From the NCBI GenBank assembly GCA_001179505.1, contig CDMY01000338.1, positions 1 to 64,000 on the forward strand: a stretch of 64,000 nt of DNA, read 5' to 3'. The translations under genes and the position numbers were made by a program. The DNA is from Vitrella brassicaformis CCMP3155. Its lineage: Eukaryota; Protista; Chromerida. Of this stretch, positions 21,528 to 31,030 are shown in pieces; within the stretch, counting starts at the first letter, position 1, and each line of letters opens with the position of its first letter. The notes beneath the pieces are model-generated. The model searched no databases, was not told the origin of the DNA, and worked only from the letters and a program-made list of their open reading frames with translations.

Positions 21528-22009
21528 TCAGTAGACGTAGATGCCGTAAGCCGTAGCGACACAGAAGAGGGTCTCATTGCGGTAGACCTCCGACACGCAC
21601 GTGTCGGTATCGCCGTCCCAGAAGCAGCGGCTGCCCACCCTCACGCCCTGCCCCCGCTGCTCGCCTATCACCACCTGCACTATCAGCTTGTACCGCGGCA
21701 AATGCAGCTCCTTCAGACGGTCCTTGACCTCGTCAGCCACGGCCTTGGTTAGCACGGGAGTCTGGTCGGCGTGATACTGCGCCTGGTCTGCCAAATAAAT
21801 TGAACCAAAATGATGCAGGGCGGACTCCACAGGGAGGAATGCATGCATTCACACGGTGCGTCTGTGGCTCTCCGTGGTGACCGCTCTGCGTACCTACCGA
21901 GTTTGGCTGTGAGTACTTCTCTGAGTATTTCCTTGACGGGCTGCGGGCGGAACTTGTCTTTGTATGACGGGTGGGTGATGTAGGTGTTCTCCACCTTCTT
22001 GCGCTCCAT
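21528..22009 (-). CDS. TCTEX1D2: Tctex-1 family dynein light chain (TCTEX1D2-like); exons 22009-21898 and 21787-21528
   Basis: ENTY..KFRPQPVKEILREVL, PRYKLIVQVVIGEQRGQGVRVGSRCFWDGDTD, YRNETLFCVATAYGIY. The phase-1 intron is consistent. Confidence 0.92.
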
Positions 22010-23325: not shown

Positions 23326-24026
23326 ACATCCGTTCGTGTGGCCGGCGGGCGGGGGAGGGAGGGAGGGAGGGAGGGAGGTGGTCTCGGTTGTGTTTTGTAT
23401 GTGTCTATAGATGGATGGGGTGGGCGAATGAGTGGGGTGGGTCGATGTGGATATGTTCTTTGAAGCGTTTCATGTGTGTGTGGTGTGTGAGTTGGTTATT
23501 TGTGGCATGGCATGCATGTGTTGTTTCATCCGTGGGGGCATCGCATCCCAGGGGTCGGCTCCTCCTTGCATCTTTTGTTTGTCAAGTACGTTCGTGTGAG
23601 AGAGTGCGAGAAGGAGCTGTGCTCCGTTGGTGTGGTTTCTGTGAATGTATAATATGGATAGCAACTAGCGATGACTGTTGTGTATGTATGTATGTGTCAA
23701 GGAGACGCACGCACTCTGCTGTGGCTGTCTCTCTGTGTGTGTCAAACTGTGTGTGGACGTCCGTCTGTGCCAGCTTGAACGGACTGGTCGGTAGATAGAT
23801 GTGCTCTTAACCAACCCATCTGTCAGGAGTCACTGGATGGCTACATATCTACACGCACTGCACACCACACCCCTACACACCCACCCACCCACGCACACAC
23901 CACTCTACACAAAGTGCTTTTTCATGGCTGTTTTCTGTTTGTGATCGGCCCAAGGCAAAGAAGCTGTCATCGTAGGCAGTTCAGCCATGAGAGAGCAGCA
24001 CACACAGAGGCACCCTCCACGGTCGC

Positions 24027-27000
24027 TCACATATCACTTTTCCTTCTCGCTGAGCATGCGCCGAGAGAGGAGCGACGCCGCTTATCCTGCTGTTGCCGCC
24101 GCTGCTCCACAGAAGGCATCTGCACAATACACAGTACACACACAAACATGGTGAAAGACCTCACTGATGTGATATGGACACACACACATCCGTACCGGCA
24201 GAGTGCTAAGATACGAGGGCACCTGGCCCTGTGTGGCGGCGACCAACTCGTGCCTGCAGACATGGACACAACAAGGATACGCACAGCCCCTGCTGCGTGC
24301 CCACCCATGACATGTGTACGCACCGGTAGTCGGCCCATGTGTGTGCCGTCACGCCATAGATGTTGAGCCGCTCCGCCACCGACGCCTCCACGCTCCTACT
24401 CCAAAAGTCGAACTCGTCAACCGACATGACCAACAACAGCTGCACGCCGCACAACCAGATACACACCACACCACATGTGTGTTGGAACCCATCCATCCCA
24501 AAGCTGTTTTTGGCCGCTCACCTTGGGCAGTTGGGCCAGGTGTGCGAGGACCCTGAGAGTCCGTGTGTCCCGCAGCCTCGGCCCATCGATGCCGTGCACC
24601 ACCAGGGCAGTGGTGGCCTGTGACGCTGCCACACACTCGCTAAACACCTGACGTGACGCACACAACACACCCAGACCACACAAGGCACATATCTCTTCTC
24701 TCTAGTGTGATTTCTCTCTCGTGTCGCTGAGCTGACGCACCTACCTACCTGTACTATCTCTTTGAGGGATCTGCCCCGGGCTTCTGCCGCCTTGCTTGCT
24801 ATGTCCTGCACACCTGCGAAGGCATTGGGCGTCTCCATGAACCGCAGCAACGGCGCCCTCAGTGGCTCGACAGCGTCCAGACGGACGTCATGGCCGTAGA
24901 GCACCAGCCGGCTGGAATCGCTGACCGATAGCATGGACGACACACACACGAACGAATCAGCATGAGGTGGTAGTGGTCTGTCTGGCCGTTGCTTGGGGGG
25001 TTTCTCCTCACTCACCTGAGGCATCGTCTGTCAAACTTATCTAGCAGGGCCTGCTTGGACCCAATGCCGCTCACACACAGGGAGAAACCGGCGACAAGAG
25101 CCTCCTTCCAACGGCCGAAGTCAAGACATGCTCGGCTGAATATCTGCAGCCAGTCAACGGTCACACACACACACACAGGGGAAACAGCCAGGCCCTCACA
25201 CACAAGGGAAACAGCCCTCCACGGGACCCGCCATTTTGCACACACCCATGGCCTCGTCCTGACCTGCTGTTTGTCCGGCTCTTGTTCGACCGGCATGGCC
25301 AGAAGCCGCTCCGCAACCCACTGCGGACTGTACTCCTCGGCGCCACTCTCCCCTGCCCCACGACGACCACCACGACCATCACCATCACCAGCAGCGGCAG
25401 CGGCAGCAGGACCAGTCGACCCTCCACGCGTAACGCGTCCGCCACCTGCACCCCTGGTGTGCCGCGCCGCCTTGCTGCCGCTCTTGCGAGGCTGGTCGGG
25501 TATCGTCTTGCCTGTCCTGACGGTGGGGAGCTTCTTCTTGGCGGCCGGGAAGGGGTGGTAGGGTGGCGCGGGATGAGAGGCTGCTGCTGCTGCTGCTGGC
25601 ACTTGCGATGGCGATAGGACGTCGGCACTGGCCTGACCCTGGACACACATAAGGATGCATGATGCGCGTCAAGTGTTTGTTTGTCGTGTGGTGGATTGTG
25701 TGTGGGTATGGCGCTGACCTTGGTTTGAGAGACAAAGAGAGGCGGCTCCTCCTCGGCTGCTGCAGGCACCTGATCGTCCCTGATGGCCACCTCCTCGCCG
25801 CCCTCCATGTCTACATCCATCATGTCCGATTGCCGCTCCCGGCCCTCACCCTGCCCGCCTTGTGGATGCACCACCACTGGCTGATCCACGCCACTGTCCT
25901 CACCTCCCATCCCCTCGCTGCTCGTCGCCTGGCCGTCCTCTCTGGCCATGCCCCTCTTGCCCTTCCTCCCTCTCGGCTGCAGTGGCTTGCTGTCGGGGCT
26001 GTCGGCAGCGGGTGGTGGGTGCTCCTCCTCGGTCTGGTGTCTGCTGCGGCCGGATCGACGGGCGGAGCGTGGCCCTTTGGTCGACCAATAGCCGCCGTCG
26101 AGGCCGTCGACTCTGGCCCCCGACGACGGGAGGTTTTCTGCAGGCGGGGGGCTGGCAGGCACAACTGCCTTTGGGGCATCCGCGGGTGCCGCTGCTGCTG
26201 CTGCTGCTGCTGCAGGGGGGAGAAGGGGAGGGATGGATGGGCCAGGAGGGGGAGGGAGAGAGGGCGGCTGTGGCTGTGGCTGTGGCTGTGACTGTGGCTG
26301 TGAGTGGGTGTATTTCTTGGCCTTCTTTCGGGTGCGAGAGGGGCCGCTGGTGAGCTTGCGGCTCTTGGGCTGGTGGAGAAGCGCGGCGAACTGGTCCTTG
26401 CTGGCTGCGTGTGTCGGACAGAGGAAGCCCCTGACCACCTGACCCGGCGTCTTTTCATAGTAGAACTGAGCAGAGAGAGAAAAGGGCAGAAGGGCAACCA
26501 CCAGAATGAATGAACGACAGCCACATCACATCCACACACTCTCACTCACCCACTCACTTACCAGCAACACATCCCCCGCATCTCTGAGGCATGACGCGTG
26601 GTAGGCCACCCGGCAGTGTGGCCAGCTGCACTGGATTGGCGCGCCGACCCCCTTGCAGCCGCAGGTGTGGCAGGTCTGCTTCCACCGAGAGGCCGGCACC
26701 TTGGCCACATCCACCACCACATGGCCCTGCTCCCCATCGCGACGCAGCCAAGTCTCGGGCACCCACAAGGCGCACCGGTGATGTGCCCACCGCCCGTCAT
26801 CCGTCGGCACCAGCGGAGGGTGCCCCTCGCGCCAACAGAGGACACACTTCATGGGCTCCTCTGGGGCGGTGGGTGAACAGCTGGCCTGCGCCTCTCTGTC
26901 TCGTCGATGGCTGCACGCGCGGCAGATCCATGGGGGGCCGTCTTCTGTCGGCTTGGTGGTGAATCCATAGCACTCGTCGTGTACCCGTGTGCCGCACCCG

Positions 27001-30000
27001 CCGTCGCAGAAGATGATGTTCTCTCCCTCAGAGCACTCGTAGCTGTCGCATATGTCGCACGGCACGAGGTCGTCGTCGATGACGCGACCACTCGAGTCCG
27101 TGTTGGCCTCTGCAAGCTTCTTGGGGCAGTAGAAACAGATGTCGAGGGGCAGCTGGCCGGACAGCGATGGCGATGGCGATGGCGACGGTGCTCGGGGCCT
27201 CTTCTTGGCCTTGGGCTTGGGCTTGACGAGGTCGACGGCAGCCGCAGCAGCGGCAGCGGCAGCAACAGCGGTGGGCCGCCGCTCGCGCACCGTCCTCTCG
27301 CGGATGTATGGCCATTTCGGGATCACCCTGCTGGGCCTGCCCCCCTTCCTCTCACCCTTGGCGGCCCTCCCTCCCCGGGGCAGAAGCCACATCGGCTCCG
27401 GCGGCTGCATTTTCTCATTCTGCATCCTCTTCGCCTGCCTTTGGGGCGAGATGCGCCGGCTGACCCTCCTGATGTTGCGAACCAGGAAGGGCAGCAAGCG
27501 CCCTGGAAACTGACGGCGACTGAGGCAGGGCGCCAGCCGTGTAGCTGCGGGTGTGGGAGACTTGTGGGCGGGCCTGGTGCGCCGAGGGGGCCGAGGGGGT
27601 GGTGGTGGGGGGGCTGCCGGCGGAGAGGGAGAGGGCGAGGGAGCGTGTCGCTCGCCGAGAGGTGGCAGGGGTGGCGCGGTTGCACGTGGCTGCTGAGCCG
27701 GCCGACCGCTGGCAGGAGCTCCTGGCAAGTTGAAGGGCACAGGAGACAGGCCACCCTGAAACATACACACACAAAGACAAACGAGAGAGAGAGAGAAGGT
27801 CACCCAGTAGCCTGTCTCAGCGTCACCTCCTCTCTGCATTCATTTCATTCCCCTCTCATTGTCCACGTACCCGAAGCGAGCTGCGCCCTGACCGCGATGC
27901 GTCTCTCCGGCCGGCCTTCTTGCGCACCACGGCCCCACCACCACCACCACCACCAAAGTCGCCCTCTTCCTCGACAATCTCAAGCTCATCATCATTATCG
28001 TCATGGGCCGTGATGCCGTGATGTCGCTGATGTCGCTTCGGCGAGGTAGGCATGCGTGGCGTGGGGCGTTTGAAGGGGGTAGGTGGCGACATGAGACGCT
28101 GCTGCTGCTGCTGCTGGGTGCCCACTCGGGGCGGTGGGCTGCGGTTGACAAAGGGCGTGGTGGGAATGAGAGGCTGATCGGGGAGAGGCGAGAATAGAAC
28201 AAGCCCGCCTGTCTGTCTGTCTGTCTGTCTGTGTGAGTGTGTACCTGTCTCTTGACAGGCGAGCCCGACGGAGATCCTGCCGATCCCCGTGGGCGGCGAG
28301 ACGAAACATCTCCGCAACGCTGCAAGCATGCAGGCAATGCAGATGAAGCAACACTCAGTTGCTCGTATGTATAATGCGGGAGTGCTGCTTGTAAAATACG
28401 GCACGCTCCGTCTGCTCTGCTCAGCCCACCTTACTTACCTCTCTGCCCTGCGCGACGCCGATATCGACACGCCTGACACAATGCTCCGGCCCCCGCTGCT
28501 GCACCCTCACTGCCCCCAACAACTGCTGCAGGCTCCAAAGGGTCCCATGAAAGCGGAGCCGCACCAGGTGCGGGTCGACCTCGACCTGCCCCTCAAGGCC
28601 CCCATGCCGCTCCTGCCGGTCCACCACGTGCCCCGCATACGACTGGAACAGCTCGAGCATCGCGATGCTCTCCCGCAGGTCCGACGGCATCAGCCGATGC
28701 ACGAACGAGATGGCCTCCAGCCGTCTCATTCCCCCCTGCGTCACTTCCAGCGTGTCCAGAAGCTGCACAGTGGGTGGGCCGCTGCGGGGAACTTCGCCAG
28801 CCGGGCGATGATAGCGCATCATCTCAGCGGCCAGGGGGAGAGCGCCTGCGGGTGTGAAGCGGTCGGAGTCGTCCGGTCGCAAGATGAGGGTCTTCATGAT
28901 CTCGTAGAGCGTGTACATCAGCATCTGTGCGAGGGCTGAGGGGCTCTTGCCCTCGCACAGCTTGGCGGCCTCATCGTTGATCTCGGCCTCCCTGTTCCTC
29001 TGGGCAGACTGCGCTTGCGAGACCGGCCGTCCTCCGCCCTCCTGCTTGTACAGAACAGACCGCCTGGCCACGTTATCCTTGAGATGACCCCACGCCCTGT
29101 GCTGCTGCCGGCTGGCCTGGGAGCCTGGGGCCGCTTCAGGGCGCGCGGCAGTCTCCAATAGACCCAGGTAGACACGAACCCTCCTCAAGTGCTCGACATG
29201 CGGCCACTGCTGCCTCTGCCCAGCTGTAGGGGGCTGTCCTGATGCTGATGCCGATGCAGCAGCAGCAGGAGCAGCAGCAGCAGCAGCAGCAGCTGAGGTC
29301 TGTGGCTGTCTGTTGGCCATGGGGGAGGGGGAGAGGGCCGGGATGGATGGGCGAGCCGGGCGAGAGGGTGTTGCGGGAGGGTGTCCGCTCTGGGTGGGGG
29401 GAGGGAGTGAGGGTCTTGTGTTGGGTGTGGGTGTGTGGGGGCCGAGCTCTCGATCGAGGAGCTCGCGCACTCTCTGGGTGAGCTTGCCAAGGTCCTGCAG
29501 TCGCTCATCGAGCTGGTCCAGGTTCATGACGCGACGGGTGCGATCGTCCAGCATGCGATCGATAGCCGTCCCAGATGGAACCGACCCATCTAACGACACA
29601 CAGGCACACACACATAGACACACACGGCCAGATGCACCCACTCCTTCCTTCTGTGCACATGTTATGTTGCTCTGCTCGTCTCTCTCACCGTACCGTCAGG
29701 GTAGCACTTGCGATGGATCTGCTGCAGGAGTTCCCATTCCTTGGCCTTCCACCTATGCCAGAAGAGCTCCAACTCCAGGAACACCAGCATGCCCAGCCCC
29801 TCCCTCTCCCGCTGCATCCGAAACCGAGCCATGTGCCGCGGCATGCTCCTCCGCAGACACGCCCGATCATCATCCCTTCGCCCGACCAGCGCAAGGCGCG
29901 TCCTCGCGTGGGGCTTGTCCTTCGTCTGCTCGATCACATAGTCCGCCTGCACTTCGGTGAGGGTGTGTCGGGCGTATAGGGGCGCCAGGGCCACCTCGCC

Positions 30001-30921
30001 CTTGACGATCCGCTCCCTCTTGTGGTCATTGGGGCAGTCGGTGAGCGACGCACAGGGATGGAAGGTGACGTAGGTGGCCAGCAGGTGCCACAGGGTGCGA
30101 CAGAGGTCGGTGAGGGTGGTGGTGTCGGCGATGGCCTGGAGGTGGCTCGGCGGCAGGGTGAAGGGCAGCATGGAGGGGTCGGTAGCGATCGCCGGGATGA
30201 CGAAACGGTCCATAAATATCGACATCCTCTCCATATTGAGCACCTTGGGCTGAAGGGCCATAACCGCGGGCAGAAGCATGCCGAGAGACCTGTTGCAGCT
30301 GCCCAGCACCAGCACCACAGACACCCCCTCCTGCCGCAGGCCCTGACAGACGGCAGACAGCCCGCCGATGCCCTGCGATGGCTCCGTCACGCCCGCCCGG
30401 CTGTCTGCGTCGGGCACAATGATGCCCACGATGTGCCTCTTGCCATCCCCCAGACCCCGGCTCCCCCGAACAGCCGTCGTGACATCCTGCTGCCAATCCA
30501 GCCAGTCGGTGAGGAAGGGCGGCGTCACAATAGGAGAGCCGGCAGGCAGCCCCTCCTCGAGCAGCCCGCTAAGGGCAATCTGCCGGTCCGCCATCGACCT
30601 ATCTTCGTCGCTAAAGATGGCCACGGCCGCAACGATGCCGGGGTGGTCCGACGCTGCATGCGGCAGTAGCTGTTGCTGAAACTGCTCCTCTGTCAGCCGC
30701 TTGCCCTGGATCTCGGTCGTGCTGAAGACCATGCTTTGGATGCGCCGCATCACCCGACGCCACGTGTTCTTCTGCAGCTGGAGGAGGGCTGACTCATCTG
30801 CCCGCTGGCTCGCTATCGAGGCCGTGCACTTGAGAGGATAGATGGTCCCTGCATTGACGCTCTCAACTGCCGACGCTGGACCAGGCGACGTAGGTACTCG
30901 AACGGCAAAGCCTGGCTCCAT
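24027..30921 (-). CDS. ORC3-PZP-ORC2 fusion protein (13 exons, 1921 aa predicted)
   Basis: Exons 30921-29694, 29589-28439, 28319-28245, 28173-27871, 27755-26562, 26465-25719, 25638-25264, 25143-25016, 24920-24749, 24647-24522, 24439-24324, 24253-24196, 24119-24027. All introns are GT-AG, all phases match, total 5766 nt with no internal stop. ORC3-like, PZP and ORC2-like motifs occur in that order. The last exon is the least certain. Confidence 0.72.
24196..25143 (-). other. ORC2: ORC2-like domain
   Basis: DFGRWKEALVAGFSLCVSGIGSKQALLDKF (ORC2 pattern F.KW..QL..GFNI.LYGLGSKR.LL..F), LVLYGHD, ALVVHGIDGPRLR..LAHLAQLPK, LLLVMSVD, VTAHTWADYRHE (ORC2 pattern TTY.PY.EE). Confidence 0.8.
26400..27065 (-). 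other. PZP module (PHD1, Zn knuckle, atypical PHD2; BRPF/JADE/AF10-type)
   Basis: CDICDSYECSEGENIIFCDGGCGTRVHDECYG..WICRAC; CVLCW..LVPTDDGRWAHHRCALWVPET; CHTCGCKGVGAPIQCSWPHCRVAYHASCL..FLCPTH (last ligands in the next exon). Confidence 0.93.
28439..30921 (-). other. ORC3: ORC3-like region (AAA+-like N-terminal part and winged-helix C-terminal part)
   Basis: IVGIIVPDADS..VSVVLVLGSCNRSLGMLLP..LPFTLPPSHLQAIAD..LTDLCRTLWHLLATYVTFHPCASL parallels the ORC3_N pattern ([48 protein letters not shown]). LRFHGTLWSLQQLLGAVR..EHCVRRVDIG parallels the ORC3 C-terminus (ARFIRAVSELELLGFIK..DHVARLTWG). Confidence 0.62.
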
Positions 30922-31030
30922 CAGACCAACCGTCCTACAACCCACAGAGAATGCCTGCCCTCCTCCTAGCGGTCAAAGCGATCCGCCTCATTGGAGCTCG
31001 CAAATGCCGCTCGCCGGAAACGAGTTCCAT

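Follow-up and report, generated by a model that had tools for sequence, protein, structure and literature searches.

The gene and its transcripts

The stretch of DNA analyzed here (the window) comprises 64,000 nucleotides (nt) of the chromerid alga Vitrella brassicaformis CCMP3155 (contig CDMY01000338.1, positions 1 to 64,000 of the forward strand). On its minus strand, at 24027..30921, lies a gene which an earlier note, made from the letters alone, had read as two origin recognition complex (ORC) subunits, ORC3 and ORC2, fused into one polypeptide with a chromatin reader between them. On balance we believe that the locus is probably one transcribed gene encoding, in this order, a divergent ORC3-like subunit, a basic linker with sites for cyclin-dependent kinase (CDK), a PZP module (PHD, zinc knuckle and extended PHD), a second linker and the RecA-like core of ORC2.

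The complete coding sequence (CDS) runs from the ATG at 30921 to the stop at 24027-24029 and, with its 13 exons joined, amounts to 5766 nt, that is 1921 codons plus the stop. All 12 introns are of the GT..AG type, with lengths of 70-120 nt, and the stop-free stretches of the minus strand between 30972 and 24030 switch frame repeatedly. The spliced model is letter-for-letter identical to the database protein P0001 over its full length of 1921 amino acids (aa). The source names of this protein are ‘unnamed protein product [Vitrella brassicaformis CCMP3155]’ and ‘PHD-type domain-containing protein’. The exon model of the earlier note, a stop-free frame built from 13 GT-AG exons, is exactly the public gene model.

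Transcripts were taken from two RNA runs of different studies, X7 (2013) and X5 (2015), using spliced contigs that matched the window with zero mismatches. In the spliced contigs of X7, 11 of the 12 introns were visible as CT..AC joints (GT..AG when read on the coding strand). The joints recovered were those of intron 1 (29590..29693, minus strand, 104 nt), of intron 2 (28320..28438, minus strand, 119 nt; side 73), which directly follows the ORC3-like part, and of the introns at 27756-27870, 26466-26561, 25639-25718 and 25144-25263. A contig of 2.1 kb, found in both X7 and X5, carried the joints 25144-25263, 24921-25015, 24648-24748, 24440-24521, 24254-24323 and 24120-24195 and then continued unspliced to ∼23449, so that the six 3′-most introns are common to the two studies. 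Run X5 contained 78% of the sampled sequence words of the 7 kb at 24000-31000, a stretch of which exons make up ∼84%. None of the RNA contigs runs the full length of the mRNA. The four junctions that had been singled out for checking (28438-28320, 27870-27756, 25718-25639 and 25263-25144) were all present in spliced RNA. The assignment of all modules to one single gene was likewise borne out, the CDS being that of a public protein and junctions on both sides of each linker being present in the spliced contigs. The gene is transcribed and is spliced as modeled, and its mRNA would be expected to yield the full-length chain. A bacterial or non-coding reading of the locus was ruled out by the canonical GT-AG introns with their RNA support.

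At the 5′ end, an in-frame stop at 30973-30975 sits within an unspliced RNA contig (30684-30979), and consequently Met1 is the first possible start. The 5′ untranslated region (UTR) occupies at least 30922..30979 on the minus strand and includes this stop. The RNA contigs show no splicing in the 3′ UTR (23449..24026, minus strand). The immediate downstream neighbor, on the same strand, is an exon for a dynein light chain of the Tctex-1 family (21531-21848; Pfam E-value 7.8e-30).

Modules of the encoded protein

By composition, the protein consists of four ordered blocks, aa 1-420, 541-793, 1121-1345 and 1681-1900, with three disordered stretches between them. The last block belongs to a domain that extends to the C-terminus (aa 1681-1921; 24027..25296, minus strand, across exons 7-13), and all six of the introns seen in both X7 and X5 support its structure. 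The Pfam family RecA-like_ORC2 (PF04084) matched aa 1681-1878 with an E-value of 5.8e-24 and 85.2 bits, against a cut-off of 25.1, over profile positions 23-209 of 251. A search of the PDB returned the ORC2 chains of Drosophila (6e-8), human (3.6e-6) and yeast (0.0097). As judged from these matches, the C-terminal part is the RecA-like core of ORC2, and the position given for it in the earlier note (24196-25143) agrees with the Pfam result.

The central module (aa 1121-1345; 26382..27152, minus strand) is split by the intron at 26466-26561. Pfam placed PHD/PHD_2 at aa 1152-1200 and zf-HC5HC2H_2 at aa 1222-1333 (E-value 7.5e-17), and all of PHD_2, PHD, zf-HC5HC2H and zf-HC5HC2H_2 exceeded their Pfam cut-offs. 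When the PDB was searched with the central part, the PZP of BRPF1 was matched at 3.4e-25, and those of JADE1, JADE3, NTO1 and AF10 were matched as well, down to ∼1e-14. The cysteine and histidine zinc ligands align residue by residue with those of the BRPF1 and JADE1 modules. Both types of comparison agree with the earlier placement of a PZP at 26400-27065, which coincides with the Pfam matches, and identify the module, at the level of sequence, as a PZP of the BRPF/JADE type.

Two linkers, delimited by composition, flank this module. Linker 1 (aa 794-1120; 27153..28319, minus strand) is strongly basic and disordered, with 64 lysines or arginines against 19 aspartates or glutamates; it is cut by the introns at 28174-28244 and 27756-27870, and of the five full CDK consensus sites ([ST]Px[KR]) of the protein, four lie in it. 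Linker 2 (aa 1346-1680; 25297..26381, minus strand) is disordered and rich in proline and alanine, contains the intron at 25639-25718 and carries one AT-hook-like motif, PRGRKGKRG. Canonical ORC2 has a long, basic, phosphorylated and disordered N-terminal region before its RecA-like core, and aa 794-1120, with their basic character and CDK sites, together with the disorder-like aa 1346-1680, are of this type. CDK-motif sites have been described on Plasmodium ORC2 (PMC7308089).

The first 793 residues are where the ORC3-like part would lie. Exon 1 (aa 1-409; 29694..30921, minus strand) is predicted to encode an ORC3_N-like ordered domain on the strength of its neighbors in the ESM Atlas. A search of the Atlas with exon 1 alone, that is, without any ORC2 context, returned ORC3_N clusters at all of ranks 1-25. 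The best of these scored 0.95 and shared 205 of 256 features; the next families, ORC5, ORC4 and other AAA+ ATPases, followed after a sharp drop, at 0.76-0.78. According to the calibration of the Atlas, a score of this size has a chance of about 1 in 100, and that many shared features a chance of 1-2 in 10. One of the neighbors of exon 1 is a cluster of 1566 aa that is mostly apicomplexan. Exon 1 also contains a degenerate P-loop-like motif, GLGDGKR, at aa 156 (30450-30470; aa 152-175), followed by a hydrophobic strand that ends in IVPDAD; these may be remnants of Walker A and Walker B.

Downstream of this domain is a disordered insert rich in proline and alanine (aa 421-540; 29198..29557, minus strand; delimited by composition), and then an ordered helical region with a possible winged-helix end (aa 541-793; 28439..29197, minus strand), at the position of the ORC3 insert and winged-helix domain (WHD). 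An AlphaFold (AF2) model computed from the single sequence showed long helices at aa 535-645, where the predicted local distance difference test (pLDDT) was 56-79, and was poor over the remainder. For aa 680-795 the Atlas gave weak neighbors of the RFX/winged-helix type (0.74). By eye, the last ∼40 residues of aa 541-793 resemble what we take to be the C-terminal motif of ORC3 WHDs, a resemblance to be used as a lead only. These observations weakly support a helical region whose end may be a winged helix. In summary, aa 1-793 would comprise an AAA+-like domain at the N-terminus, then the disordered insert and last the helical region, whose end may be a winged helix, and we consider it likely, although not proven, that the region is a highly divergent ORC3.

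Weighing of a proposed single ORC3-ORC2 chain

Several points bear on whether a single chain is made of ORC3 and ORC2. The first concerns intron 3 (28174..28244, minus strand; 71 nt, GTACAC..GATCAG), the only one of the 12 introns without a direct RNA joint and one upon which the fused frame depends. This intron holds a (GACA)n microsatellite at 28205-28240, whose 31-mers are present in many unrelated public runs. The stretch 28090-28246 was masked as a repeat in the comparison with the RNA contigs, and the joint, which falls inside it, is for this reason not directly visible. With the 11 RNA-seen introns alone the frame is broken into overlapping open reading frames (ORFs) of 1103 and 1203 aa; another splice that restores the frame is therefore needed between 28319 and ∼28170. 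Two adjacent genes might thus have been wrongly merged by a mispredicted intron. Besides the missing joint, the coding potential of exon 3 (75 nt), which is poor in the frame of the model (-6.4), and the existence of 70 alternative GT..AG pairs that would restore the frame too are in keeping with such an error. The surrounding evidence is not. The RNA joints 28439|28319 and 27871|27755 bind exons 2-3 and exons 4-5 around the 449-nt interval in question. The frame that enters the interval from exon 2 runs on without a stop anywhere in 28319-27871, leaving no place there for a separate upstream gene to terminate. Exon 4 has a strong coding signal in the downstream frame only (+27.8 in the frame of the model versus -5.7 and -47), while intron 3 scores about zero in all frames. 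In addition, eight sampled 31-mers specific to the unspliced form of intron 3 were found in the DNA-like runs X2, X3, X4 and X9, and the same eight have no listing for X5 or X7, the runs of spliced RNA. We have little doubt that the fused reading frame across this intron is real, and regard a merger of two genes by misprediction as very improbable.

A second point is the depth of the transcripts. Word depth in the RNA contigs was flat, at 3-9, over the upstream 4.8 kb from 30979 to ∼26313. In the contig covering 26213..23449 (the last 2.1 kb) it was 62 in X7 and 125 in X5, ∼10-fold above the upstream part. Given this step, it is possible that the full fusion is not what the abundant RNA encodes. 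The rise could result from 3′ bias or from an internal transcript start in exon 6 that gives an ORC2-only product. If the latter were the case, the locus would have two products, a rare full-length fusion mRNA and a ∼10-fold more common short transcript starting inside exon 6 (∼26200-26300) and encoding only an ORC2-like protein of ∼390-430 aa, and the working ORC2 would be a free subunit. In-frame methionine codons at aa 1490, 1503 and 1532 could serve such a transcript, and the difference in depth is as it would predict. However, the contig break falls at 26179-26312, a stretch of low complexity that was masked and in which assemblies break anyway, and the same picture of depth can arise by 3′ bias when an mRNA of 6.5 kb is sequenced from poly(A) libraries. 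Neither read starts nor a cap signal nor a promoter was seen at the locus. We regard two products as possible but rather unlikely.

The most serious objections concern the identity of the N-terminal region. The recognition value of the Atlas for exon 1 was 2045, under the reliability level of 2300. The Pfam families ORC3_N (PF07034), ORC3_ins and WHD_ORC (PF19675 and PF18137, for the helical insert and the WHD) gave no match at E ≤ 10 to the whole protein, to the raw ORFs or to ten fragments of aa 1-800 (among them aa 1-150, 1-420, 40-300, 150-300 and 150-420), although the filters of HMMER discard most matches above ∼0.1 and a very weak ORC3 match could thus escape. Searches of the PDB by phmmer with exon 1, exon 2, aa 1-800, aa 140-300 and aa 680-795 returned low-complexity noise only and no ORC3 chain. 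An exhaustive phmmer search of 1.84 billion cluster representatives with exon 1 found only P0001 itself (E ≤ 0.001); having no homolog from this search, we could not build an alignment for exon 1. A scan of metagenomes with exon 1 found no relative either. The single-sequence AF2 models were of low confidence, with a pLDDT of 34.6 for aa 1-420 and of 47.6 for aa 535-800. Foldseek matches of these models to the PDB (APOBEC and helical bundles) were discarded as noise. Finally, the Atlas neighbors of aa 535-793 were unrelated helical families, none of them ORC3. By the earlier note's own standard, profile searches that do not match the N-terminal region to ORC3 would count against the fusion, and at the level of HMMER they did not match. 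In favor of the ORC3 assignment is the result from the Atlas, in which the 25 nearest clusters are all ORC3_N.

These negative results would agree with a different description of the protein, namely a long ORC2 with a PZP reader whose N-terminal 793 residues are lineage-specific and unrelated to ORC3; Vitrella would then have lost ORC3 or would hide it elsewhere. The lack of any ORC3 signal by Pfam, by phmmer against the PDB or by exhaustive phmmer, the recognition value under the reliability level and a second half of the region without ORC3 neighbors all favor this description, as does a published survey that found no ORC3 in Vitrella with custom hidden Markov models (HMMs) and TBlastN (PMC7058166). 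Against it is the composition of the Atlas result, in which nothing but ORC3_N precedes the sharp drop to the other AAA+ subunits of ORC. These neighbors, out of millions of clusters, are precisely the direct partner of the ORC2 that is found 1300 residues downstream; chance is very unlikely to have selected this family, and the coincidence weighs in favor of ORC3. Moreover, ORC3 is the least conserved of the ORC subunits (PMC7058166), and for this reason the failure of HMMER is not unexpected. We consider an N-terminus unrelated to ORC3 rather improbable and retain a divergent ORC3 as the preferred assignment.

The remaining points concern the completeness of the ORC2 part and the number of ORC2 genes. 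The protein lacks a WHD after the RecA-like core. It ends 43 aa past the Pfam match and 77 aa past the stretch aligned to Drosophila ORC2, which reaches residue 470 of 618, and this leaves no room for the domain. No Pfam match was obtained for aa 1840-1921 at E ≤ 10. An ORC2 WHD was also sought downstream, in the 3′ UTR and in further exons, and none was found; the RNA continues unspliced through the 3′ UTR, and the gene that follows is that of the Tctex-1 dynein light chain.

The survey of Ocana-Pallares et al. 2020 lists two orc2 and no orc3 for Vitrella, after searches with custom HMMs and TBlastN (PMC7058166, Suppl. Table 1). In the same survey a single ORC2 and a single ORC3 are given for each of Toxoplasma, Plasmodium, Perkinsus and Symbiodinium, and the other non-ciliate alveolates, except a gregarine, hold one or two ORC3 (PMC7058166). 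The pattern for Vitrella would fit a fusion that was counted only as ORC2. It also implies a second ORC2 gene in the genome (PMC7058166). Word-indexed searches with the ORC2 domain, in length windows of 452-1438, 605-1925 and 1056-3360 aa and at E ≤ 10, found only P0001. The two copies of ORC2, if both are real, must then be very divergent. The cell may have ORC2/ORC3 besides the fused polypeptide, which is not necessarily the canonical form, and P0001 may be a specialized paralog. Such a paralog would have the architecture described here but would be neofunctionalized: after losing the ORC2 WHD and gaining a PZP, it would serve as a chromatin factor or form an alternative variant of ORC, with the canonical subunits encoded at a second locus. 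The two ORC2 genes listed for Vitrella (PMC7058166) point in this direction, as do the absence of the ORC2 WHD and the extreme divergence of the protein, exon 1 having no homolog among 1.84 billion representatives. On the other hand, no other protein emerged from the word-based searches with the ORC2 domain, and two studies show the gene to be expressed, with correct splicing. We judge a neofunctionalized paralog to be unlikely, though it deserves more weight than an unrelated N-terminus, and the reading of P0001 as a fused ORC3-ORC2 subunit of the complex is followed below.

Proposed origin and comparison with known systems

Of the earlier proposal of a covalently linked ORC3-ORC2 with a built-in reader, the single gene, the PZP and the ORC2 core are upheld, while ORC3 is not supported by profile methods. 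ORC2 and ORC3 are adjacent and tightly interacting neighbors in the ring of ORC structures. If the N-terminal region is ORC3, the most economical origin would be that an ORC3 gene lying upstream was fused by read-through to an ORC2 gene downstream of it. Residues 794-1680 would then represent the usual disordered N-terminal region of ORC2, into which the PZP would have been gained before or after the fusion. To form the ORC3-ORC2 pair within the ORC1-4-5-3-2 ring, the two ordered ends could fold back on each other. With its ∼890 residues, the tether would let both ends reach their usual neighboring places in the ring, and it would enforce a 1:1 stoichiometry. By presenting the PZP, the tether might hold ORC on nucleosomes or the H3 tail, as the BAH domain of ORC1 or the PHD of plant ORC1 does. 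Both assembly into ORC and histone reading are predicted here from the arrangement of the modules.

Carried further, this line of thought suggests a chromerid ORC built on a single-chain ORC3-ORC2 with a PZP tether, in which reading of the H3 tail, on the ORC2/3 side of the ring, directs origin licensing and the apparent ‘loss’ of ORC3 is an artefact of the fusion. We offer this extension tentatively and with more reserve than confidence. In a literature search we found no paper describing an ORC3-ORC2 fusion or a PZP in ORC, and the survey cited above was the only relevant paper that it returned on ORC of Vitrella (PMC7058166).

The composition of ORC outside yeast, animals and plants is poorly known, and in relatives of the malaria parasites several subunits are missing or unrecognizable. 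Should the N-terminal part be ORC3, the published inference that Vitrella has none (PMC7058166) would be corrected, the subunit being fused and not lost. The protein would be an ORC3-ORC2 that nature has made as one chain; it would confirm that interface independently, in the manner of a ‘Rosetta stone’, and might help in expressing an alveolate ORC. It would also represent a third independent attachment of a reader to ORC, after the BAH domain of ORC1 and the PHD of plant ORC1, here on the ORC2/3 side. The missing WHD of ORC2 raises the question of how the ring closes on DNA and is handed over to Cdc6 and MCM.

The protein can be compared with several known systems. In canonical ORC (Drosophila 4XGC, human 7JPO and yeast 5ZR1), ORC2 and ORC3 come from two genes, whereas in Vitrella one polypeptide would carry both, with a linker of ∼890 residues and a PZP between them. 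The RecA-like core of ORC2 is recognizable in both. Vitrella ORC2 differs from the canonical subunit in having no WHD, and the ORC3-like part is too divergent for HMMER. The joining of two stably pairing proteins in one ORF is likewise what defines Rosetta-stone fusions.

With regard to the central module, the PZPs of BRPF1, JADE1/3, AF10 and NTO1 have the same arrangement of PHD, zinc knuckle and extended PHD as the Vitrella protein, and the characterized members bind the unmodified H3 tail and DNA. These relatives are scaffolds of histone acetyltransferase (HAT) complexes or a DOT1L cofactor; unlike the Vitrella fusion, which would be part of ORC, none of them is a replication factor. The Vitrella protein is without EPc, bromo or PWWP domains or other HAT-scaffold parts of its PZP relatives, and its binding of the H3 tail and DNA is predicted. 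A histone reader on an ORC subunit has its closest parallels in the BAH domain of ORC1 in yeast and metazoa and in the BAH-PHD of plant ORC1. The PHD was gained by ORC1 of Chloroplastida through domain rearrangement (PMC7058166). In Vitrella, by contrast, the reader would be carried on the ORC2/ORC3 side instead of on ORC1, and the domain itself is of another kind, being a PZP and neither a BAH domain nor a lone PHD.

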